Origin: Orbicella franksi
Taxonomy: Eukaryota
DNA: 64,000 nucleotides
Assembly: GCA_964199315.1 (NCBI GenBank)
Contig: OZ116699.1
Span: forward strand, 33,542,001 to 33,606,000
Direction of reading: 5' to 3'
In this document: positions 9,146-62,777 of the stretch, in pieces
Position numbering within the stretch: position 1 is the first letter of the stretch
Layout of the letters: each line of letters begins with the position of its first letter
Notes under the pieces: model-generated
What the model was told of the DNA's origin: nothing
Seen by the model: only the letters and a program-made list of their open reading frames with translations
Database searches by the model: none
Position numbers and translations under genes: made by a program

Positions 9146-10362
9146 ATAACTCCATTAGCAACATAAAAACTGCAGGGAATCAAACGATTTCTTAAATTAC
9201 TAACGAACAGACAAATGAGTTATGCAAAAATTATTCAACATCTGTTAAATAATGACTCACAAGTTGTTTTCTGAAAACTCATCGACTCAATTTTAGTGTC
9301 GTCACTTCTCAGTCCCCGCCGAAGTATATGTATTTCATATTTCATCCGGGAGACCCAGATTCACGCAACAGTAAACTGGGTTGAAAGGGGGAAAAAGAGG
9401 AGCCGAATGCAGTGTAATCAACTCTTCGTGTGTGCTCCTGGGAGTACTAATTTTTTTAATTATTCACTTTTTTAAGAGAAAAGAGAAGATGCTTTATTGC
9501 AAAGCTAGCGAAACTAAATATGGTGAAGCTCGCATTATAATCCAATGGTGAGCGCTCACGGTGTGAACAAAGTTGACTTCTCTTCGCCCTTTCCATTAGC
9601 GATGTTATGAAACAAATAAATTAATTTATTCATACTTTTCGCTGGGCATTATCATCATCGATTGAAGATATTCTTTGGAAGTTCAGTGAGCACTCAATTA
9701 AGAAGCTCAGTCCTCTCGAGTTTCCCTCTTGATTTTCCCGTTATAACAGAACGTTCGAGGTTAACAAGTTTATATGGCTCCTTGCCCCGGTTTTGCAGGC
9801 CTGTAATCGGGCCGTGGGCGTTACGGGAGAATAATGCCTTAGAATAAGCCAATGAGAGCTCGCGTTATATCGGCTACAAACACAAGCCGTAAAATAAAGT
9901 ACGAAATTAAACGTACTGCACGGGAAGAACAGGTGTCTGCTTGTTGCCGGATAATGATTGACCTAAAATGGCCTCATTTAAATGACGCAGTTTTTTTACT
10001 GTTACCGAATCTCCGAGAATTCTTCATTATGTTTCTTCATTGTTATAATTTTTAATCTGTTGATGGTCGCGTTTATATAGAGTTGGTATCAATTCCAAAC
10101 CTTTATGAATTGTTGACTTCTGTAAAATTTCGTGTTCTGATCCGATAGGGTTTCCATGTAATTTCATTGCCTACAGGAGAATCAACTGTGCGTAGAGGCT
10201 TTCTTTAGGCTGTTATTCAGTCACAAATACAACTCAACGCAGGTGTCCTGAAAAGGTTAGGCACTAAAATATTAATGATTAAAAGAAGCTTGTAAAATTT
10301 GTGTATGGGATGAAAGTTATTCAACACCAAATTGAGAAAATTGCCACCCAAATTGCGTACGA

Positions 10363-46718: not shown

Positions 46719-48743
46719 CAAAAGTATTTCAAGGTGGAAGCAGAAAATATCAGTTAGCATAACACTAGACATTCTACACGATGTTGACTGGGTGTAGAGA
46801 CTAAATTTGGATATGCAGTGTTTAACTTACACGTTCACAGATGCCTTTTACAGCACTGTTCCTAAGTCATCAGACAAAAAAATGTGTCTATAATCTAAGT
46901 ATAGTATACATTACGAAAAGGTAAAATTAAGAGGTATACTAATCACGGCAGGATTTCGAGTCAGATCCCGAGTTAGGATTTCGAGGAAGGTCTATTTTAT
47001 TTTTTATTTTGTTTATGTGAGGGAGTTGAAATGTGTAGCCATGCTTCCATGATATTCATGCAATTTTAAAACTATTCAGTGGTAAATGTATATAGCATTG
47101 CCAAAGCAAGCTAACTGTATGCAAAAAAATCACACTGATATAGCTGACCGGTTTTTCGTTTGGGAATCCTGACTCGAGATCCCGACTTGAAATCACTCCA
47201 ACTCGAAATCCTGACTCCGAGAATAAATTAATATCCTAAGAATCGATCAGAACTAACAAAAGGTTATATTATAACGTTTAACTTCAAAGCATTAAACTGA
47301 CAGCGCAGCTGCAATCAACCCACAACAGAGACCGTCTGATTATCGAAACTCTGATTACCATTAATCGACAATATCTAAAATAGAAAAATTAATTTGAAGT
47401 TGGTAAAGGTAAATGAACTGCAGCCGATTTTTTTTTCGACTCGCGCTTCGCGTTCGTGTATCGCGTTTCGCGCTCTGCCGCAAAACCAGCCGCCATAGCA
47501 AGTTTGTGAAACTCGAAACGGCAGTAAATTTATCTTTATCAACTTAAAGCTAAAAAAAATAACCGTTTCATAAAAAAAGAAATATTAATTTTGCTCGGCC
47601 ATAGAAACACCTGTGTATTTATACACTGTCGTTTACTTTTTTACATGTAATAATTTGAATCTTAAAATTAGTCTTTTAAGAAAATCGTTCACGCCAAAAC
47701 AATGAGGACTTCATACCGACGTAGGTTGTAAGTTAATGTAATCTAACGGCTGGAATAAAACTTTGGCTGTATTAAAAATGTAATGAGAAACGTGTGTACA
47801 TTTTGACTCTCTTACCTGGAGTAATAGTTTTTTTAAACAATTTTTTAACAATTTTCTAAATCACTAGACTAGGAAGTTGTAACTGATTTGTTTTGTTCGC
47901 CGACGCGTTTCGTCTAATTATCGTAGACCCCAAAACGTTTCAAGCTGAGTCAAGGTATTTTGAGTTATTTTGGCCAGGTCGGCTGAATTACCCTTGAATA
48001 GAAGGTAACCAGAAAATATTAGTTCACTAAGATAGAAAAACACCAAAGAGATGATGATGACAATAATAATAATAATAATAATAATAATAGAATATTAGAA
48101 TATTTTACAGATTCCCCTGTTACCTCATGAAAATCCAGGAGGTCCCATCAGGGGGTCTGAGTATCCATATCCCATCAATTTTTTCCCTAAATATTCCGTA
48201 CCATCAATTCCAGTTTTAAAAATCGACAACTCTCCTACTCGATAAAAGCGTGAGGAAACTTCTTAAGCCCTGACCGATCTCCTTCCTTACGTTATTATTT
48301 CATCGGCTTCAAGTATCAACGAATTCTTACAACTTATTTTAAAACAAAGGTATTTAAATCGCTAAGGAAAGTTGACAATTTTAGCTTTTAATTTAGAAAC
48401 AAACGAAAAATTCTAGATTTCAGTATCCACATTCTTGTCAACATATGCCGGGCCTGGTGTAAGTGTTATTATTGGTCATTAACGTTTCTCACTTGCCATA
48501 GGATTGTTTTAACAGCAACGCATTGGAGGACGGCAGCTGTGAAATAAAGAACGAAAACGATTTTTAACGACCCCCTATCGAGGTTCTTGTCCAGAGTTTC
48601 GTTCAGTCGATGCACCTGTTGGAAGTGGAAATCTCTTCTAGAATTTTCATTGTAAACAACTCGTCGAGACCATCAGAGGAACACATTCAACACGTCTGGT
48701 TTCATTTGACTGTGTTGTGAGAACGGGGATTTCACAGACAAGT

Positions 48744-50621
48744 ATGCCACGCATTCTTGCATCCTTATGTATAGTGCTGATATTTGCTAAAGGTATCAGT
48801 ATTTCCAGTTCTAGCTCATCTTTTCTCCGTTTCTTGAGCACTGTCACGATGTGCACAAGCTTGCACAAATTTGCGCATTTTTTTACTATTTTACATGAAA
48901 ATCATTGACTGAACATGTAAGCTTTAAATTAAATCTTAAACCGTAAATGATACAAGTATCTTGGATCAGTTCAGCCTGTTCTTAGACACGAGATGAAGTT
49001 TATTTGACCGAAACAAGCTCTCCCTAACAAACTTAACAAAGTTTAGATTTTTAATCCCGACAAAAGTATGATTTTAAATTGTAAGCTATCAGTGTCGAAA
49101 TATAATTCAGTCAGGAAAAAATAACCTATATCAGACTGTTGTGGTAAGCACGTAGTTTTACTGCTCTGTATGTTTACATCGTGCCAAAAAAGAAATATGC
49201 AATTAAATTTTGAGTGGCTCCATGTTTGAGCCAAGGTCTCTGAGGAAATTTCTGAGCGCATTTCATCTAATTCAGTTTTAATATCACTAATTATTCTGAG
49301 CCCGCGTACGGAGGCTAGTGGGATATCAGTGACTGGACGTCGTTTGCGTTAGGACTCGCGACTTCGGCACTGTGCGATTTAAGTTCCATCCAATGTAGTC
49401 TACTCTATGTAACTCCCTTATCCCTTTACCATCCGGTGAGGTTACATAACCGTATAAAACCCACTGGTATTGAATTTACAGAGTTATCAGGCATCAAATG
49501 TTTCGCATGTGAGCCAGGAGGTAACTGCCGAAAGGATATAAAAGAAAAGAAATGTCCCAAAGAGCCACTATTGATGGACAAATGTATGCTAATGATGGAT
49601 GATGAAAACGAACAGGTATTAATTATGTTGTTCTGTATTAATGTAAAATATCAATGTATGATTATAACTGTCATGTTAGCTCAAAGTAGCTTGTGAAAAG
49701 GCTCCGGCTGGAAGGGTCTGACCGCTGCAGAAAGAGCCGAGAAGGAACTGGGCTTGAGTGAAGTGAGCGGCCTGTTAAAAGGCTAAGCTTAAAGCTAGTT
49801 TTCACGCAGGCCACTCCGAACAGGTTGACAGCCAGTACCCGTGGAGTTGTACTCGGGTGGAGGACCTTGAACTCGGGACTACTGGCCTGTAAGGTTCTTT
49901 ATCGTTATTATCCAAGCTTGTATGCATTAATTTCCCAAAAACAAAATGACCCATCTTCAATGTCAGTTCAAAGTATTTGGAACCGAGTTTATCGAGGTGA
50001 TATCCCCGAGCTGGTCAGTGATTTCCTGAGTTCTACTCTCAGTGATTTTAAAGGGAGAAAAATCAGCGTCTGATGTAAATTCTTACTAGCTATTGCATTT
50101 GTCAGCACGAGCTCCACTACAAGTGAACCTCGTTTATTTCGAAGATGATTGGTGAGGCTACCGGAAACTTGTGTGGATGAGGATAATGCGAATTCTGAGA
50201 ATTAGATTGGCAGTTGTTTATGCAGGCTCTCAGACAGAAAATAACCCAGCAGTGGAATAGTCAGTTGTGTACTTGCTGCGACTGTAGCCTGCATAACAGG
50301 CGTGGTGGGGAGGGAAAGGAGGAGAAAGGCAGCTGGTGAGGTGGGGTACGGAAAAGTTTTCCCTTGTCCGTCGTGTTTTGCGCCTCCCCCTCTCCTTCCC
50401 CGTTTATTTCTGTAAATATTTTCTTTCAGATTGCAAGAGACTGCGCCAATAACATGATGTGTGAAACTGCAAGGAATAATTGCAAACAAGCCAAAGAGGC
50501 GAGGACTGGGGATTGTGATGTCACCTGTTGTTCAGATGACCTGTGTAATGCTGGCTCAACTTGGTCGCCATTACTCTGGCTTTCTGGGCTGTGTTTCATC
50601 GGTTATGAAGTGCTTTCGTAG
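48744..50621 (+). CDS. LU-7: GPI-anchored three-finger protein, 124 aa, three exons (48744-48792, 49482-49615, 50430-50621)
   Basis: MPRILASLCIVLIFAK|ELSG-IKCFAC...DKCMLMMDDENEQ|IARDCANNMMC...TCCSDDLCN plus tail. Phase-1 then phase-0 GT-AG introns. 12 Cys. Confidence 0.9.
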
Positions 50622-51191
50622 AACTTCATAGTCAGGACATTCGTAGCCAAACCCTGACAAGGATTACTGTATTGCACTGCAATTGAATCAGTAAGATAAA
50701 ATCGCACTGTCACGAGATTCCAGTACGTTCAGACAAGATTTATTGTGTTCCTTAATACGAGAAGCATGCATTAGATGGTGAGGTAACAAAGTACCTCTGG
50801 ATGATATCTATTTGTTGTAATTTCACGTATGCTGTTCATTTGTAGTTAAATCATTTTAACGTTCAGTCTGTAACACTCTATCAACAATAAAGACTTAAAA
50901 ACAGCTCGTATCCTTGCTTTCTTAGGCAGCACACTTTTCTCCCACGTTTCCTCTCTTTATCTACGGGAATAAATAAGCATCAGCAAATTAGGTGCCGAGA
51001 GAAGGAGGCCTGTGATGGACTAGCATCCTATTGGGGCGTGGGGGGAGGGGGCGGATATTCTCGAAGTCGTTTCATTCTCGAATGCTGATATAAATGGAGA
51101 ATTAATAAATAAGACCTCATCCGGGAATCATCTTAGGTGACCTGGAGACGACTTGACTAACTTATACACGGACAGAGCGACAACTTGCTAA

Positions 51192-54100
51192 CTATGATTG
51201 AAGTAATGCTTGTTTCCCACTTTCGCAATTCTTGCGTTTCCGTCTCGCTTCACTCGTCCGCGAGGAAAAAATAATGGCTAACACGATCGAAAAAAGGAAA
51301 GCCAAACTCCCGTGCGGGCTTGCCGTCGAGTGTGTTCCACCGTTACACAGGTGTCCATGGCAACATCCATATGAACATGATTCAGTAATGCTGCTTTGTT
51401 CATTACAATGAGAACCTGGTTTGGAACACTCGCTGCCCAAAGCGCAATCTTTTGCAAATATCTTGGTTGTGTTATTGGCTTGGTTGGAATTTTTTTCAGA
51501 GTCGTGCGTTTCTTCTTTGTTGAACGTAGCACAGTGTTCAAATCTGAATGGACATGTCTTTTCTACCTTGTGCGTGTTACAGTGGTCCCAAGAAATGGTA
51601 CTTTGACAAGAGAAGCATTTCGTCCCTGAAAGTTAGAGAAAAATATTTCGTAAACTCAAATAAATAGCCCCTTGCTAACCGAGCGTGAGGGCCCTACTGG
51701 GGAATATTAACTTGAGGTCTTGGCAGTACAGACCGAGCGTAGCGGGGTCCTTACAAATGCGACCAAGAGCAGTAACCCCCAGTATGGCTCGAGCAAGCTA
51801 CGACTAGTAAATAGTTTATTATATGGCACTCGAAAATAAAACAAATACACGACTTATGACAAGTTCTATGGAGACTGTCCGTATGGCAAAATCCTTCACA
51901 AGATCAATCAGAGCGCTCGGATTTACTTCAAGACTATCTTGTCATATAACAAATTCACATATTTTCTCGTTTGTCTTGCTTCCTCCAATAATGTAACTCC
52001 TCCACGTACCCAAGTATATAAATGGGTACCGGCGAACTTAATGCTGGGCCGGGCGGTAACTGTGCTATGTACTAGCCTCCCATCCAGGGGGAGTAGAAAT
52101 ACTTCTAGTCGCTTATGATACGGAAACCGGGATAAGCTCCGGCGGTATAGACCACTTGGCTCGAAGGAGACTTAATCATTACCAGTCTACACCACATGAT
52201 CACATGCTACACACAATTCTCTTGTTTAAGCTGTTGGTTATTGTTTATTTAGCAATGCCCTGAGTGACTTTACTGACCTGAGCAGTAACCCCAGCCCGAT
52301 CCGTTCACGCTTCCATCAAACTCAGACTTTGTCGCGCACCAGTAAAGACCTTCTGGATTATCCTCTGTAGCGGCACAGTTTTTGTACTCCTTTCCACGAT
52401 ACTTAAACGGAAAAATGCAGCAGTCTCCATCTGTAGTTTTTACAAAACACTGAGAATCTGTCACTGAGAAAAATTAAACAAAGAAAAACATTCCCTCAGA
52501 ATAAAAAAACACAGGAATGGAGATCACAGACCTCAGAGGTAGGGTGCTGTTTTTCACTTTGTTTATCTACAAATATCTCAATCCACTGATTAATTCTTTA
52601 CGAGGCATACTTATGTTAAAATCTGAACTAAATAGAGGAATAACACTCACATTTCACCTCTTGGATATTGTGCAGTTTCACGGTCTATAATCATGCATGA
52701 TTCCACACATTATCGAGCTAGCAGCAAAATATAAAGTTTATCCATGCATACTGCCACAAATTCTCCCGGGGGGGGGGTAATCCCCAAAGTTTTTTTGTGG
52801 GGGTGCGCAGTCCCGGCGAACCTTGAAACGAAACCTTCAGACCAAATACTTGATTTTTCACATCCTATTTTAGACCTGAGTGAAAAATCGATACCCCATT
52901 ACAGACCTCTAAAATTAATACACGGCTCTAATAGACAACCGCAGCTAACCAGAACTGGCTTCCATTTGTGTAAACATTTGAGAAGGGCGCACAAATATAT
53001 TTGCCAATGTTGATGCGGAGTTCATTGCCAACAAAATACCCGATGCAAAGCCAGCGAAACACATAGTTTGCTTAATTTTAGAAGAAAATGGTCAAAATCT
53101 ATTCCCTTTTTTCAGTCCAAGTAGAACAACAGCTAACAAACCACACCCCTTGGGACACCACTTACCTACATAGGCCATATAAGGGAGTACCCAACCGCCC
53201 CCCCCCCCCCTCCCCTTTCGGGAGAATTCTATAACCTAAACCAACTGATACCGTCACGCTTATTAGATTAATTTTATTGTAGCTTACATTTGCAATATCC
53301 CCAGCTGGTGGATACATTTCTACTGTATTTGAAGTCTTCTGTGGCGCACCAAAATCGATTATGGATATCACCGTGGTACGTACAACTCCTGTATCGTATT
53401 CCTTTATAATAGAACGGAAATCGACAGCAATGATTATCAACTGTTCTTTGGGTGCAAGCAGTGCTTTTCTCTCCTAGAATTGCTGAAAACACATAAAAAT
53501 AACTTCAATAAACTCAAAACTGCATGCCCAAAATTTTAACATCCCTACTGGTTCCCAGTACTTTCTCAGATAATGTTAACGCGCGCGTCGCGTGCAGGCG
53601 TGGATGTTTTCGTGTAGGCTGATTTGAAGATAATTTTGTACATAGTCTAACATGACGGAAACATTATTCAATGTATGTGTGCCATGATATATATAGCTTC
53701 TTTAAAGCGAAATGATCGACGGAGAAACTCTTTATTGGCTTTCTTCGACAGACGGCCATGGACCACCTGCCGTTGAATTAATTAATATTCAGCTTATTCA
53801 ACCAAGGACCGCCGTTTTAAATTTTAACTTTTATAACTAGTAGTAATCAGAGATTATGAGAGTGCGTTCGACGCTCTCACTTTAATATATCTATATATAC
53901 CGTAAATAAGTGATTTCACTAGCTGACTTTTAAACCTTTCAACCAAGGACCGCCGTTTTAAATTTCAACTTTTATAAAAACACTTATACGCCATCTCGCG
54001 GTGTGTTTTTGCGAAGATTAATCGCGTGAACGAATGCCAACCTTCTCTCAACGAGTTTATTCTACTGATCAACGTCAAGTAATAAGACCGAGTCAAATCT

Positions 54101-54650
54101 GTTTGACTTTTACAAATTTCAGTATCAAGTCCGAGTATATAATGGCGGATCAATCCCTAGTGATTTTGTTATCAAATTCATCGGGTTTTTTTAGACTATT
54201 TTGCATTAAAAAACAGGTAGCTAGCGATTCGATCATAGCTAGGTAAAAATACGTCATAACAGCCAAGAGTATTGTATTGCGACTTGAAATTATTCGACAA
54301 ATTTTTTTTTTTTTTACTTGCGCACATGTGGAAGGAAATTAATACTCTTCTAAAGGACTACATCATGTCTTAGACCCAAGAGGCTCAATCCTTGATTGTT
54401 CGAAGTCAAATACTTTGATCCTCTCATGTCCCTCCTAAACTTATTCATGTGTAAGAAAACCATGAAGACCTCATATATACGCATTGTTCAATATTACTAG
54501 ACAAAAGTGTAAAAATTTAAGTCAGAGGCGATACTATTACAAGTTAATCCAACAAGAATAGGGGAAGAATTGATCTCTCTGGACTCAACGCCTCTTACCT
54601 TTCAAAGAACAGCTCAAAAGAACGGCGAACAGGCAGATTCGATTCGACAT
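51192..54650 (-). CDS. LU-8: signal peptide, FN2, FN2, LU domain, hydrophobic segment and basic tail; 285 aa (exons 54650-54599, 53473-53288, 52463-52278, 51625-51192)
   Basis: MSNRICLFAVLLSCSLK|G; FN2-1 CCRFPFYYKGIRYRSCT..FWCAT..WGYC; FN2-2 CCIFPFKYRGKEYKNCA..YWCAT..WGYC; LU TKCFSC...AKDC...GCCHGHLCN (12 Cys). All three introns are phase 1 with GT-AG ends; total 858 nt = 286 codons. Confidence 0.88.
52765..53222. mobile_element. MITE with CCCGGGGGGGG termini in LU-8 intron 2
   Basis: CCCGGGGGGGGGGTAATCCC ... GGGAGTACCC..CCCC..CGGG; imperfect 8-bp TSD CAAATTCT/AGAATTCT. Termini resemble 21797-22176. Confidence 0.6.
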
Positions 54651-55249
54651 CGGCTCTAACTACTGTAGCCATCTGGCTATGTTGTGGTCAAACGATATGC
54701 ATGCTCCGATAATTCCTTCATGTAGTATATTTGTTCATAAATGTTTCATGTCACTCAAGCGGCATAACTTCTCCGACCCAACATAACAGGATGATATGTT
54801 ATGACAACTGGCGGTACAATAATTGACACACACTCGTTTATTCTGACATGATTTGCATTGCATTGTCAATTCACACCTGTGTGAGTTCAAGTGAATTGGA
54901 CCCATCGTCACTCGATCGCGACTGAGTGGTTTCCGGTTTGGATCACGAGGCAAAAGTTTGACTGGCTAAAAGCGGATTTTGCATGAGCAGTAAATTTAAA
55001 AAGACTCTCTTTTTTTTTTAAGGATAGCTAAGAATTTACGGCTTGGCAGCGTTTGATAAGAAATAGCTCCTGCGTTGAAATATCATGCTAATACTAATAA
55101 CAATAAAAAAAAACAGGAACTTGAATTGATGTCTGTCGATGTCTTGCAGGTTTCTAAGCAACTAACTGAACTAATTACTATGCAGAGGACAGACGTTTTA
55201 TAGAAAAAAAAAACAGCGTGAGTTTAAAAAATCTGCATAATATGCTCAA

Positions 55250-55791: not shown

Positions 55792-57108
55792 ATGTGCCGA
55801 TACAGTTTTGGTGTGGTAATATTTCTCGCGGCTATTTTGCCTTTCTGTGAGTATATCAGAGTACAAAACTGTATTTCCGTGTTCTTGGTATATTTAATAA
55901 GCAAAACAGCTGCAAAATGTTGACAACTGATCATTGCTTCGGGATCTCGATAAACGTTATTTGAAAAAAACATATTTAGAAAACGCAACCTTGTCTGTTT
56001 TCTCCTCGTCGGCAAGCTTTTAACTTGTAGTCTAACACCAAGCTTTGCTTTCTTAGTACGTCATAGAGGGAAAGCGCTTTTATTTTTCCCAGTTAGGAAC
56101 GGAATTCAGTTTGCAGTCACTCCTCATTCGAGATCGAGAACCGATCGAAAATTAAACTACGCTTGACTTCTGTTGGGCCGTTTCTTCCAAACTATTTTTA
56201 GAGCCTAAAATCTGATAAGAAAAAGTACTCCACCTATTCACATAGATGTCAACGAGATCTCATTCATTTAAAGCTCTACTATATAGCCAGAACTCGGGTT
56301 TAAATTATTCGGCAAGATTCGGGTATGAAAAAGTTTTGAATTTGAAACCTGGCTAGTGGGGGAGTTTACACCGATAGAAAATTATGATATCATTGCAATT
56401 TTGCAATACCGATCTTTTATCGGCTAGTTCAGATATGGCAGATATATATATTGTATGGTATGATATATTGTTTGACTGACTGATTAAAAATGTGATTATT
56501 TGACTGCCTGAGTAACCCAGACTGACTGAATGACTGACCGACTGAGTGACTGACTGACTGAGTGACTGAGTGACTGAGTGACTGGCTGGCTGGTTGGCTG
56601 GTTGGCTAGCTGACTGACTGACCGAAGGACGGAGAAGCGGAGGCCAGACAAACAGATTGATCTGTGACAGACTACATATTTATTACCCAGACTGACTGAC
56701 TGAACGACTGCCGCAATTTTTCTATTGGCTTCAGGTTCTTCGCAGCTATGCTATTCCTGCCCGAAATCGGCATCCATGGAAAAATGCGACGCCCAAAGGA
56801 CACAATACAACTGTTCAATGATTGGCTCCTTTCACACCAAGTGCGCACGCTTCTGTGACTGGAAGAACGGCGTATATCATCGAGAATGTACCATGGATTT
56901 CAAGTGCGAGAGAATGCAGATGGAATGCGAGGAAAGAGTGGCAATGCAGGATCAGAAACAGAAAGAACTGGAATGCGAGTACAAGTGCTGTGAGGGAAAC
57001 CTATGCAATACTGACCCGTGTAACCTGGGGTCGAGCATTCGTCCACGATTGATGGGCATTGTGGGAATTGTCTTTGTCGTGTTAAATGTGATCACGTTCT
57101 GTTCGTAA
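55792..57108 (+). CDS. LU-9: three-finger protein, 142 aa, 14 Cys in the ectodomain (exons 55792-55846, 56735-57108)
   Basis: MCRYSFGVVIFLAAILPF|CSS-QLCYSC...TKCARFC...RECTMDFKC...KCCEGNLCNTDPCN plus hydrophobic tail. T|GTGAGT donor and TTCAG acceptor, phase 1. Confidence 0.88.
56470..56710. repeat. Degenerate (ACTG)n/(GCTG)n tetranucleotide array at the 3' end of the LU-9 intron
   Basis: Direct reading. Confidence 0.8.
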
Positions 57109-59390: not shown

Positions 59391-62012
59391 CTACTCTGCA
59401 ACTAATCTGACTTTGTTCCAGGAATTTCTGATTATCTGTTCGACTTGAGGTGCTTCAGGATGACGCAGCACATGAGGATGGAATGCACCTGGGTTAGGAG
59501 ACTCCCCTTCCTTCTGGGCACCACTAGCATCATGGTCGTCAACATACATCTCCAGCTCTGTGGCTGTACAGCAGCACAAGCATTTGCGAGTTGTCTTCAA
59601 TTCCAGATCTTTGAAGAACCTATAATCCATGTACTCCGTTCGAACTGACAAGACATTTGAGAAAAACAAATTACCATCACTTTCTACCATCTCGAGGTCA
59701 AATTAACTTTTCATTATCTTCTTGCTAAATTGTTTGGACTCTACACTCTTGAAATACACTATTCGCCACTAGAATTTCCAAGACTTGATATAAGCTCATC
59801 CAACATAAATTTTGTGTTGATTTGGAGGGCTCTTTTTGACAGGCTTTTTCTATTAAGTGCCTTGACTAGGCCAGGGTATGTCTTTTTAAGCATTTCTTAA
59901 AAGTCTCGAGAACATTTAGGTAAATCTGGATCTATTTTTCTGATGGGTTAATTTGTTCCGAGTTATTAAAACTGAGAAACTTAGCTTTTATCAACCTGAA
60001 GTTGATAAGGGCAAATAAACTGCCACAGGAAATTTGAAAAGCTGATGATTTGAGTATTAGCCTTTTATCACAGCAAAGCTGGGGATGGTAGGTTGTGTAC
60101 ATGTTCATATAAAGCATTAGGGAGTTACACCTAAGTTGTAAAGTTCACCGCAGTGAAATACAGCTAGATTTAATAATAATGAAGTGTTATCATTTGTCTC
60201 ACATTGGGATGACTTGACATGTACATCACAATGTTTCAATTGCATACTGCTAGCCTCCATCACCTGATGAAGACTAACAACTGTTATGCAGTCCAAACAC
60301 TGCGGTTTACACCATGCAGGTGACCACATTGTGAGACAGACATTTATTATTAATAATACTTTATTCAGTGTTATTACTGGGGATTACAATTGGTATTTAG
60401 CAATATAAATTTCAAGAATGAATGAACTAAATGAGAAACATTCACTAATCCCATTTGAGGGTCAATGTGGATTAGAGGAACCTATGTTCAAAATATATTT
60501 TCAAACCAAAACTTGTCTTGTGATGTTAGTGGGAAACATATTATAAAGGGCACCTGTTACAGACTTAAAGCACTTTCAAATGGGAGAAGTACTTAAGCAG
60601 GGAGGGGGTTGTGTTTTATTGGAAGGAGAGTGCTAATCAATGGTAGCAATGTTAGTGCTGTGTGAATAAAGAAGAATTTGTTGATACAGAAATATGACAG
60701 TTCTAAAAATTTACCCTCCATCCACAATCCACAGGGTGGTTCTCGCTTGTAAAACACGCCTTGCCCTGTCACACGCCAGTAGGTCTTAGCTAAGCAGCAT
60801 GGGCAGAAGTATGCCACGCAGCATTCTCCGCAGTCTTCTTTGTAAGCAATGCCAGGAGCAGGCGTCATTCCAGACCACTTGGCGGCACTGAGTTCAGCTT
60901 CTCTCTTTTTCTTCTTTAACAATCCAATTAGCTCTGTCAGATAAATTCTGTCTCCAAGACATGTTATCCCGAGTTCATGAAGGTGACCCTGAACATAAAA
61001 ATTAATACGTATTTAATTACGTCCCTTCATGACAGTGCATGTACTTTCCCATAACTAACTCGGTGAGCTTCATTCCATCAAAACTACAATGCTTCAGTCT
61101 AAGTTACTGTTTGACAATGTCAACTAGTAAGTTTACTTATCACACAAATCATGTAGAGCTACCAAACAATTTCCCACATTAAACTACACTTTCCTATGTT
61201 GCACAGAGAGAGGAAAAGGTTGTTTCATTGAGACTGGTATAGACAAACAATAATGGCACATGCTTTATTAACTAGCATAGTGTAGCTAATTAAAATACAC
61301 TGTCTTATTGTGTTACTTCACCAAGCTTTAAATTTTACGATTTATTATTATGTCTGTCACTCACGCTAGGCTTTGACATTGCTGATTTTAGCAGTAAGGT
61401 AGCACTTACTGTATTAAAATTATGTTGGTACCCATGATATTATAAAATCCAGTAAAATGACCCAGCTACATGTAGCTTTCCAGGAATTTTCTGTAGCACA
61501 GTGAAAAGAGCACCTGACTTGTAAGTGGAAGGTCATAGGTAAGAACCCCATTAGGGTTCTGTTTCTTTTTAAATTGTCCCATGCTTGAAAAATAGATGAT
61601 TGATATCATGTCAACTCTTGTCAACAAATGCTCGTATAGTGCCAGTGGAATTCTCTGGTGGCAGCCTTGTATGCAGACACATACGTTGAAGAATTATATC
61701 GTATCAACTGTTGTCAAAGAATTGTTTGTATAGGTGGCAGTGGAATTTATTGGTGGGGGCCTTGTAAGCAGACACATATGTTGAAGATTGATGACAATTA
61801 TTTTAAACTAGTCAAACATTATCTATTGAAAACAAACAGTGAACAGTTCGGTCAGTTGTTAGTTTTGAGTTGCTTTAGGTATATTTGTCAACTCACCTCG
61901 TTCAAAAGCATGAGGCATTTACCATTGATCTTGTTCGCATAAAACTGTTCTGCCATATAACCCAATCCAGCACGCTCAAGAAACTGTTGGTTAACCTCCT
62001 GTACCGACCAGC
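59391..62012 (-). CDS. SAM-domain protein with Cys-rich clusters and an unassigned C-terminal domain (exons 62012-61897, 60988-60715, 59644-59391; 5' exon(s) unresolved)
   Basis: WSVQEVNQQFLERAGLGYMAEQFYANKINGKCLMLLNE|GHLHELGITCLGDRIYLTELI fits the SAM consensus across a phase-0 intron. A phase-1 intron then joins PPCGLWME|VRTEYMDYRFFKDLE... to the stop. Confidence 0.8.
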
Positions 62013-62777
62013 CTGTTGACAACAAGGATAAATATGGCTTGTCAGACATATGTAAATCAACTGTTTTATCAGCTATTTTAAAAGAGTCAGTCTTATGACA
62101 TAAGAGTTGTTTGGACCATATACATGCATGCCTGACTGTGCAAGTGACAGTCAAATGTCTGCACTTAAGATCAAAGTGACCTATGCTGATAGAACCTATG
62201 GTTTCCATAGACTGGTGGGCAGGAGTTAACCTCCCCCTGTCATAGCCGCGAGCTATTATGTCAAGAACAGGATGCAATGTAGGTTGGTTAGTTATTTTAA
62301 TACCTTAAGCAACATGGCTGGAACTACATACAAAAGATCGCAAGGCACAATGGTTCACCTGGTGCTCACTTGACTGAAAGTGCATTTGAAGTACATATCA
62401 TCACCCCCCTCCCCCCTCCCCCCCCCCCCCACTTTCCGATAATTTGTTGTGGACCAAGTGCTTTGTTACTACTGTAGTTTGACAAATTCTACATTGTGAG
62501 AGCAACAAACTGTTTTACCTATAAACTCAACATAATGTCCTTTCCCAGCACTTGAACCCAGACTGTTCAATATGAACCCCAAACAACTAATCCTTATGCC
62601 ACCTGATCATGACCACCACACTAAGCAAGCACATTTATGCTCTTTATGTACTTCATGTCTTAAGGTCTGACACAAAATGAAAATTGTACAGATGAGGTAT
62701 TTCTATAGGCGAATCTTTGTTTACACTTCTTGCCTTATTAACATATGCTTATCGCTATCTGATGACGCTAATAAAAG

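Follow-up and report, generated by a model that had tools for sequence, protein, structure and literature searches.

A conserved and transcribed stony-coral gene encodes two fibronectin type II modules and a Ly6/uPAR three-finger domain in one predicted cell-surface protein

A 64,000-nt stretch of the Orbicella franksi genome (GenBank assembly GCA_964199315.1, contig OZ116699.1, positions 33,542,001 to 33,606,000; hereafter the window, whose own numbering is used throughout) carries on its minus strand a four-exon gene for a signal peptide, two fibronectin type II (FN2) modules, and a Ly6/uPAR (LU) three-finger domain with a hydrophobic C terminus. Gene models of the family are already public and both domains are well known; what is new, as far as can be searched, is their joint occurrence as a conserved, transcribed stony-coral family. 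The original prediction for this locus, made from the window's letters, had presented the gene as a new chimera. That part did not survive, since the same four-exon gene with the same neighbors occurs in Pocillopora and Porites, orthologs are present in Acropora and Oculina, and the protein is already in RefSeq under a misleading name (XP_020616091.1). Its remark that no FN2+LU protein had been described still stands: literature searches, including a 2026 survey of LU architectures, returned no description of the combination. Taken whole, the explanation that we favor, in which a transcribed and conserved gene encodes an anchored co-receptor for extracellular matrix, is fairly probable, a judgment that blends a secure gene model with a less secure mechanism.

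The minus strand of 51000-54900, read and spliced by script, gave four exons (signal peptide, FN2, FN2, and LU plus hydrophobic tail), with GT-AG sites and phase 1 at every intron:

54599 to 54650, minus strand: exon 1, 52 nt; start codon and signal peptide MSNRICLFAVLLSCSLK, plus 1 nt; phase-1 donor GTAAGA
53288 to 53482, minus strand: exon 2, 195 nt, FN2 module a; phase 1-1; Pfam fn2 E = 1.9e-10; mRNA block 53484/53482-53288
52278 to 52463, minus strand: exon 3, 186 nt, FN2 module b; phase 1-1; six cysteines; Pfam fn2 E = 5e-12; covered by an mRNA block
51192 to 51625, minus strand: coding part of exon 4, 434 nt; LU domain with 12 cysteines ending CCHGHLCN, Ser/Gly-rich spacer, hydrophobic segment, basic tail, and stop
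50109 to 51191, minus strand: 3' untranslated region (UTR), at least 1083 nt; contig L006 aligned continuously from 51628 to 50109 at 98.4%

This placement agrees with the original prediction apart from the start of exon 2, which had been put at 53473 (186 nt). Two spliced contigs, L006 and L007, and all orthologous proteins place the acceptor 9 nt upstream, at 53482 (ttttcag, followed by CA); the correction adds Ala-Ile-Leu, matched by ILG in all orthologs, keeps exon 2 in phase 1-1, and yields a product of 288 residues. Exon 4 closes with a hydrophobic segment of about 16 residues, a basic tail of 24 residues, and a stop codon at 51194-51192. N-glycosylation sequons at N73, N136, and N195/196 fit passage through the secretory pathway.

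The transcript evidence came from searching first with the LU exon and then with a family profile, which led to protein P0064, 288 residues long and uninterrupted in each of the JGI contigs L006 (2028 nt) and L007 (1491 nt). Both contigs align to the window (BLASTN) in four collinear blocks at 98-100% identity: 54720/54801-54599, 53484/53482-53288, 52459-52277 as aligned (consistent with exon 3 at 52463-52278), and 51628/51625-50109. The first block, at 99-100%, extends the 5' UTR to at least 54801. L006 and L007 are spliced mRNAs of the FN2-FN2-LU gene or of a near-identical allele, and their junctions match the model exactly, so that signal peptide, both FN2 modules, and LU domain stand in one mRNA of one gene, as had been proposed. 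The gene is transcribed; RNA-derived contigs carry no tissue information. P0064 and P0076 (98-99% identical) served as proxies for the window's spliced protein in database look-ups. Between the corrected protein and XP_020616091.1, which is named [quoted passage not shown], 4 of 288 residues differ. We regard the gene model as correct with near certainty.

Three assemblies of closer relatives (L001, L002, and L003), with LU domains 73-81% identical to that of the window, are collinear and syntenic with it and retain the exon order, exact splice sites, phases, and open frame; exon 1 is conserved in L001 and L002. Among these loci, exons are 84-91% identical, compared to 70-80% for alignable non-coding sequence. 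Nei-Gojobori ratios of nonsynonymous to synonymous change (dN/dS) are 0.11-0.18 for FN2 module a, 0.14-0.28 for module b, 0.23-0.33 for LU, and 0.4-1.5 for the C-terminal tail, which shows purifying selection on both FN2 modules and the LU domain. Beyond these relatives, full-length orthologs were identified in Pocillopora, Porites, Acropora, and Oculina:

Pocillopora damicornis: XP_027051956.1, "72 kDa type IV collagenase-like"
Pocillopora verrucosa: XP_058944399.1, "72 kDa type IV collagenase"
Pocillopora meandrina: CAH3103998.1, partial
Porites lobata: CAH3034730.1
Porites lutea: XP_073239276.1
Porites evermanni: CAH3162977.1
Porites harrisoni: KAM7448980.1, "the peptidase M10A"
Acropora millepora: "fibronectin-like isoform X1"
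Acropora cervicornis: KAK2563807.1
Oculina patagonica: ACROYT_G007831

In the genomes of P. verrucosa and P. lutea, the same four exons are present with identical intron positions and phases, and the neighbors are those of the window: a SAM-domain gene on the upstream side and a small convergent LU gene on the downstream side. The signal-FN2-FN2-LU architecture is also found on many intron-less Logan assembly contigs, and contigs from public RNA-derived assemblies include a cluster of 56 members in Pocillopora and 36 in Porites. The shared gene and neighbors in Pocillopora and Porites, together with full-length orthologs in Acropora and Oculina, indicate that the fusion is older than the Complexa/Robusta split and belongs to a scleractinian family instead of a single lineage. 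A word-limited search found no named full-length member outside stony corals (the Logan contigs P0007, P0067, and P0070 carry no taxon). The original prediction had allowed that the architecture might prove common and already characterized; it is indeed conserved across stony corals, but the domain combination is undescribed in the searchable literature.

The Pfam fn2 model (PF00040) scores the two exons at 41 and 46 bits against a gathering cut-off of 22.2 and matches 12 of 12 orthologs (best E = 5.6e-25). Modules a and b are 42% identical to each other, carry the motif CxFPF...C...WC.T...WGYC, and align residue by residue with the modules of MMP-9 and MMP-2. Neither the canonical cysteines (C37/C51/C63/C81 and C98/C112/C125/C143) nor the core residues F/P/F, W, and Y vary within the family. 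Each module has six invariant cysteines, because an N-terminal pair (C27/C36 in one, C88/C97 in the other, in the pattern C-x8-CC) joins the four canonical ones; this additional pair may mark a coral FN2 subtype. The best matches in the PDB are MMP-9 (E = 3e-21) and MMP-2, then fibronectin, factor XII, and PDC-109 (E = 8e-6); the gelatinase and fibronectin matches (E = 3e-21 to 1e-10) are far ahead of that to PDC-109. A gelatinase or peptidase M10A identity, as the names of some orthologs have it, was rejected: none of the 12 orthologs matches Peptidase_M10, and the proteins are 249-290 residues long. Separately, a Desmophyllum pertusum model named "Phospholipase A2" (P0127, 166 residues) is 69% identical to P0064, the family query, in the FN2 part only (25% of the query); it is a further FN2-bearing coral model whose name is questionable.

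Pfam LU models detect the LU domain in only 4-5 of 12 orthologs, Orbicella not among them. The PF00021 cut-off of 24.8 is passed by ortholog P0007 (31 bits) and by P0006, an open reading frame piece of a Porites ortholog (27.3 bits), and these are homologous to the window's LU exon at E = 7e-19 and 1e-22, respectively. A profile of 43 LU sequences searched against the PDB returned uPAR at the top (E = 5e-9, with all three uPAR domains), then LYPD6 (2.8e-6) and LYPD6B (1.1e-5). An AlphaFold2 model of the LU part by itself reached a mean local confidence (pLDDT) of 74.7 and a predicted template modeling (TM) score of 0.60. In a Foldseek search with this model, all 50 PDB matches listed were three-finger proteins: LYPD6/6B, uPAR, snake toxins, Lynx1/2, and BMP receptor ectodomains. 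LYPD6B and uPAR led by E-value among those listed, the best being a modest 3.7e-3, and TM scores reached 0.62-0.65 (0.62 for 6gbi, LYPD6). Twelve cysteines are invariant family-wide, from C148-x2-C151 to C232-C233-HGHL-C238-N239; they comprise the ten-cysteine Ly6 framework (CxxC, CCxxxxCN) and an extra pair, C218/C228, in the third loop. Profile and model comparisons thus confirm the predicted assignment to the Ly6/uPAR three-finger class (Pfam clan CL0117), with LYPD6 and uPAR as the apparent closest relatives. The ESM Atlas returned LU-type clusters only, weak (score at most 0.82) and useful as a lead only, and no FN2+LU cluster.

All 12 orthologs have a hydrophobic C-terminal stretch directly after a spacer of small residues, and most terminate at or soon after it (Acropora, Porites, Oculina, P0007, and P0070). 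That most of the proteins stop there makes a glycosylphosphatidylinositol (GPI) anchor likely as the ancestral state. In Orbicella and its close relatives, 10-24 further, mostly basic residues follow, an extension that other corals lack; in the window (51192-51265) the hydrophobic segment is followed by RTSEARRKRK.... This basic tail would allow a single-pass anchor in place of GPI in the Orbicella lineage, and the extension could represent a lineage-specific switch from a GPI to a transmembrane anchor. The six cluster paralogs examined end likewise in a hydrophobic C terminus.

The surroundings of the gene suggest how the architecture arose. A six-frame motif scan of the whole window detected about ten LU-type exons on both strands, and FN2 solely at the FN2-FN2-LU site. 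At six paralogous LU exons, the acceptor is in phase 1 and its polypyrimidine tract is good, and four of these exons have a phase-1 signal exon of 46-55 nt located 0.9-3.8 kb upstream. The FN2 exons thus sit at the position of the cluster's phase-1 intron, as had been proposed, and the accompanying observation that paralogs have more residues before the first cysteine than the FN2-FN2-LU gene was borne out for each of them. The paralogs are 20-28% identical to the LU domain of the FN2-FN2-LU gene. In vertebrate genes, too, each FN2 module occupies one phase 1-1 exon, as is known from work on exon shuffling. Symmetric 1-1 FN2 exons at the phase-1 intron position of a signal+LU gene fit the symmetric-exon shuffling that the original prediction invoked. 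It is reasonable to suppose that, before the split of crown scleractinians, a signal+LU gene received two phase 1-1 FN2 exons in its phase-1 intron, an ancient event as opposed to a recent one. The FN2-FN2-LU gene would then be a clean non-bilaterian case of class 1-1 exon shuffling in which genes of the recipient type are still visible in the same genome.

The 288-residue product comprises a cleavable signal peptide, two tandem FN2 modules of six cysteines, one LU domain of 12 cysteines, and a predicted C-terminal hydrophobic anchor, and we propose that it is exposed at the cell surface, on the outside of the plasma membrane. The membrane-distal FN2 pair would bind an extracellular ligand, most probably a collagen-like matrix, because collagen is the commonest ligand of FN2 modules (fibronectin, MMP-2/9, and Endo180) and the modules of gelatinases and fibronectin are by far the best matches. 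The LU domain of uPAR, LYPD6, and Lynx1 engages a membrane receptor nearby, and the membrane-proximal LU domain of the coral protein may likewise contact a neighboring receptor in cis. Such a co-receptor would tether cells to matrix or sense it; for this mechanism by itself, sequence comparison takes us to a little short of an even chance. If the FN2 pair does bind collagen, the protein would be a candidate receptor between cell and matrix in corals, where the molecules that attach tissue to skeleton are poorly understood.

Several observations weigh against this proposal. The end of the Orbicella protein, a hydrophobic stretch followed by RTSEARRKRKNCESGKQALLQS, is atypical as a GPI signal. 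The LU exon of the window has a single Pfam LU match, to the Lypd6 family model UPAR_LY6_2, which scores 16.7 bits where the cut-off is 31.5, and P0064 gave no match to Pfam LU models at E <= 0.01. A full-length AlphaFold model built on a 12-sequence alignment had a pLDDT of 38.7 and was discarded, leaving no usable domain arrangement. Some transcripts may skip the symmetric FN2 exons, although no such isoform was seen in the length range able to hold one. Finally, a collagen ligand and a phosphorylcholine-lipid ligand, the latter bound by the FN2 pairs of seminal BSP proteins, are not separable by sequence.

Two alternatives concern what the protein is. The FN2 and LU exons could belong to separate genes, or the FN2 exons could be dead or always skipped, in which case the chimera would exist only in the reading of the genome. 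Exons that are symmetric in phase (1-1) can drop out with the frame intact, and read-through at the exon 3 donor meets a stop after three codons (SGQ*). Against this, all four exons are joined in two independent mRNA contigs, which contradicts the separate genes that the original prediction had named as its undoing; the full architecture is carried by dozens of intron-less contigs from other corals; and the FN2 modules evolve at a dN/dS of 0.11-0.28. No further signal exon is present within 5 kb upstream of the LU exon. A separate LU signal exon inside intron 2 or 3 was looked for and rejected: none was found, and intron 3 of L002, at 69 nt, is too short for a separate LU promoter or signal exon. 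Two RefSeq Acropora models without proper FN2 domains seem to favor the separation, namely P0008 (A. digitifera, XP_015780304.1) and P0063 (A. millepora, XP_044173038.1, isoform X2), but they are poor models of the same gene. Both take FN2 module b in a false reading frame and continue through intron 3 until they enter the LU frame, and they look like models built on intron-retaining transcripts and not real LU-only isoforms. With this evidence we consider an artefact extremely improbable. A different possibility is that the protein is secreted, as a component of venom, mucus, or skeletal matrix, and that the hydrophobic segment is not a stable anchor. Secreted LU fusions do exist in cnidarians, for example Kunitz+LU (PMC13719153), and the tail evolves near neutrality (dN/dS 0.4-1.5). 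Yet the spacer and hydrophobic stretch of all 12 orthologs form the pattern of GPI-anchored LU proteins, and the same ending recurs in all six cluster paralogs examined. Cleaved GPI signals, moreover, usually evolve fast. A secreted protein is thus very unlikely.

The remaining alternatives concern what the domains do. The FN2 pair could act as in BSP proteins and ELSPBP1, binding choline phospholipids on another membrane (a gamete, symbiont, or microbe), with the whole serving as a recognition molecule. The tandem FN2 modules with a short linker resemble the BSP architecture, PDC-109 is among the PDB matches (E = 8e-6), the RefSeq name of the O. faveolata protein points the same way, and the LU proteins Bouncer and SPACA4 act in gamete recognition. 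However, gelatinases and fibronectin match the modules far better than PDC-109, the RefSeq name is an automatic best-hit label, and BSP proteins are secreted, without LU domain or anchor. The many RNA-derived contigs in Pocillopora and Porites do not suggest restriction to gametes, although their sample metadata were not read. Membership of the BSP/ELSPBP1 family itself (secreted proteins of tandem FN2 only) was rejected, as an LU domain and hydrophobic anchor follow the FN2 pair, and we hold the lipid-binding role to be unlikely. It could also be that the LU domain is the working part, modulating a receptor in cis (LRP6/Wnt or nicotinic type) as LYPD6 does, while the FN2 pair merely localizes or clusters it on matrix. 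LYPD6 and LYPD6B are the closest single-LU structures by profile and by fold (TM 0.60-0.63), the weak Pfam match is to the Lypd6 family, and the extra cysteine pair C218/C228 of the third loop resembles one in LYPD6. Against this, the domain shares only about 24% identity with LYPD6, similarity between LU domains at such a distance is no predictor of ligand, and the LU domain evolves faster than the FN2 modules (dN/dS 0.23-0.33 compared to 0.11-0.28); this division of labor, too, appears improbable. A narrower form of the matrix co-receptor proposal would make the protein a stony-coral-restricted, anchored collagen or matrix receptor, a one-chain counterpart of the vertebrate uPAR-uPARAP pair that links cells to mesoglea or to the organic matrix of the skeleton, for instance where calicoblasts or desmocytes attach. 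Such a receptor would have gone unrecognized so far because Pfam misses the LU domain, and in so specific a form we think it unlikely.

As Pfam misses the LU domain in most orthologs, all database names of the family derive from the FN2 part. These names (collagenase-like, fibronectin-like, sperm-binding protein-like, and peptidase M10A) are wrong or uninformative and hide a three-finger receptor domain, and they would misdirect differential-expression and single-cell studies of corals. Searches of coral papers for the family's RefSeq and UniProt names and accessions found none. A "fibronectin type II" entry in a coral skeletal proteome preprint was considered and set aside; it is actually type III.

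Other features were recorded around and within the gene. The convergent LU gene lies on the plus strand at 48693-50620 (exons at about 48693-48794, 49481-49618, and 50424-50620); its last two exons show 50-63% protein identity (tblastx) to the gene at the same position in P. verrucosa (L008) and P. lutea (L009), and the 3' UTR of the FN2-FN2-LU gene is antisense to its last exon. The convergent gene thus looks live and conserved. The SAM-domain gene lies on the minus strand at 59394-62031 (exons 62031-61894, 61006-60713, and 59669-59394) and is 85-95% identical in protein to its Pocillopora and Porites counterpart in the two larger exons and 76-78% in the third. Orbicella has an extra LU gene on the plus strand (55792-57100) between the SAM-domain and FN2-FN2-LU genes. 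Intron 3 contains a repeat of about 160 nt (52017-52180). Copies of 76-81% identity lie at non-corresponding positions of L001, at about 16075-16224 and, as a piece of 99 nt, at 10043-10140, and of L002, at about 16345-16504. The repeat is probably an element similar to a short interspersed nuclear element (SINE) or a miniature inverted-repeat transposable element (MITE), and it helps account for an intron length of 652 nt here compared to 69 nt in L002. An Rfam scan of 49-57 kb gave no match.

Among known systems, the coral protein resembles the non-standard invertebrate architectures surveyed by Paramonov et al. (2026; PMC13719153), in which LU is joined to a second extracellular module: Kunitz in cnidarians and, elsewhere, C1q, fibrinogen, Ig, MAM, and others. 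FN2 is no partner in that list, probably because the survey found LU domains by Pfam models, which fail to detect the family in most species. LYPD6 and LYPD6B (GPI-anchored; 6gbi, 6ib6, and 6zso) share a single LU domain, a spacer, and a C-terminal hydrophobic signal, and by profile and fold (TM about 0.6) they are the solved single-LU structures closest to the coral domain. They lack FN2 modules and are about 24% identical, and their vertebrate roles at Wnt/LRP6 and nicotinic receptors are not transferable to the coral protein. uPAR and its partner uPARAP/Endo180 form a two-protein system that together brings LU and FN2 to the cell surface, as the coral protein would in one chain. These are separate chains, however: uPAR contains three LU domains but lacks FN2, Endo180 carries a single FN2 module among C-type lectin domains, and for the coral protein there is no evidence of a protease or of collagen uptake. 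The BSP proteins, such as PDC-109, and ELSPBP1, from which the RefSeq name is drawn, likewise carry tandem FN2 modules after a signal peptide, but they are secreted and vertebrate-restricted, lack LU domain and anchor, and have FN2 modules of four cysteines compared to six in the coral. The FN2 modules of MMP-2, MMP-9, and fibronectin are the best sequence matches and are also encoded one per phase 1-1 exon; the coral protein differs in having no catalytic domain, despite the collagenase and peptidase names of its orthologs, and in the additional N-terminal cysteine pair of each of its modules.

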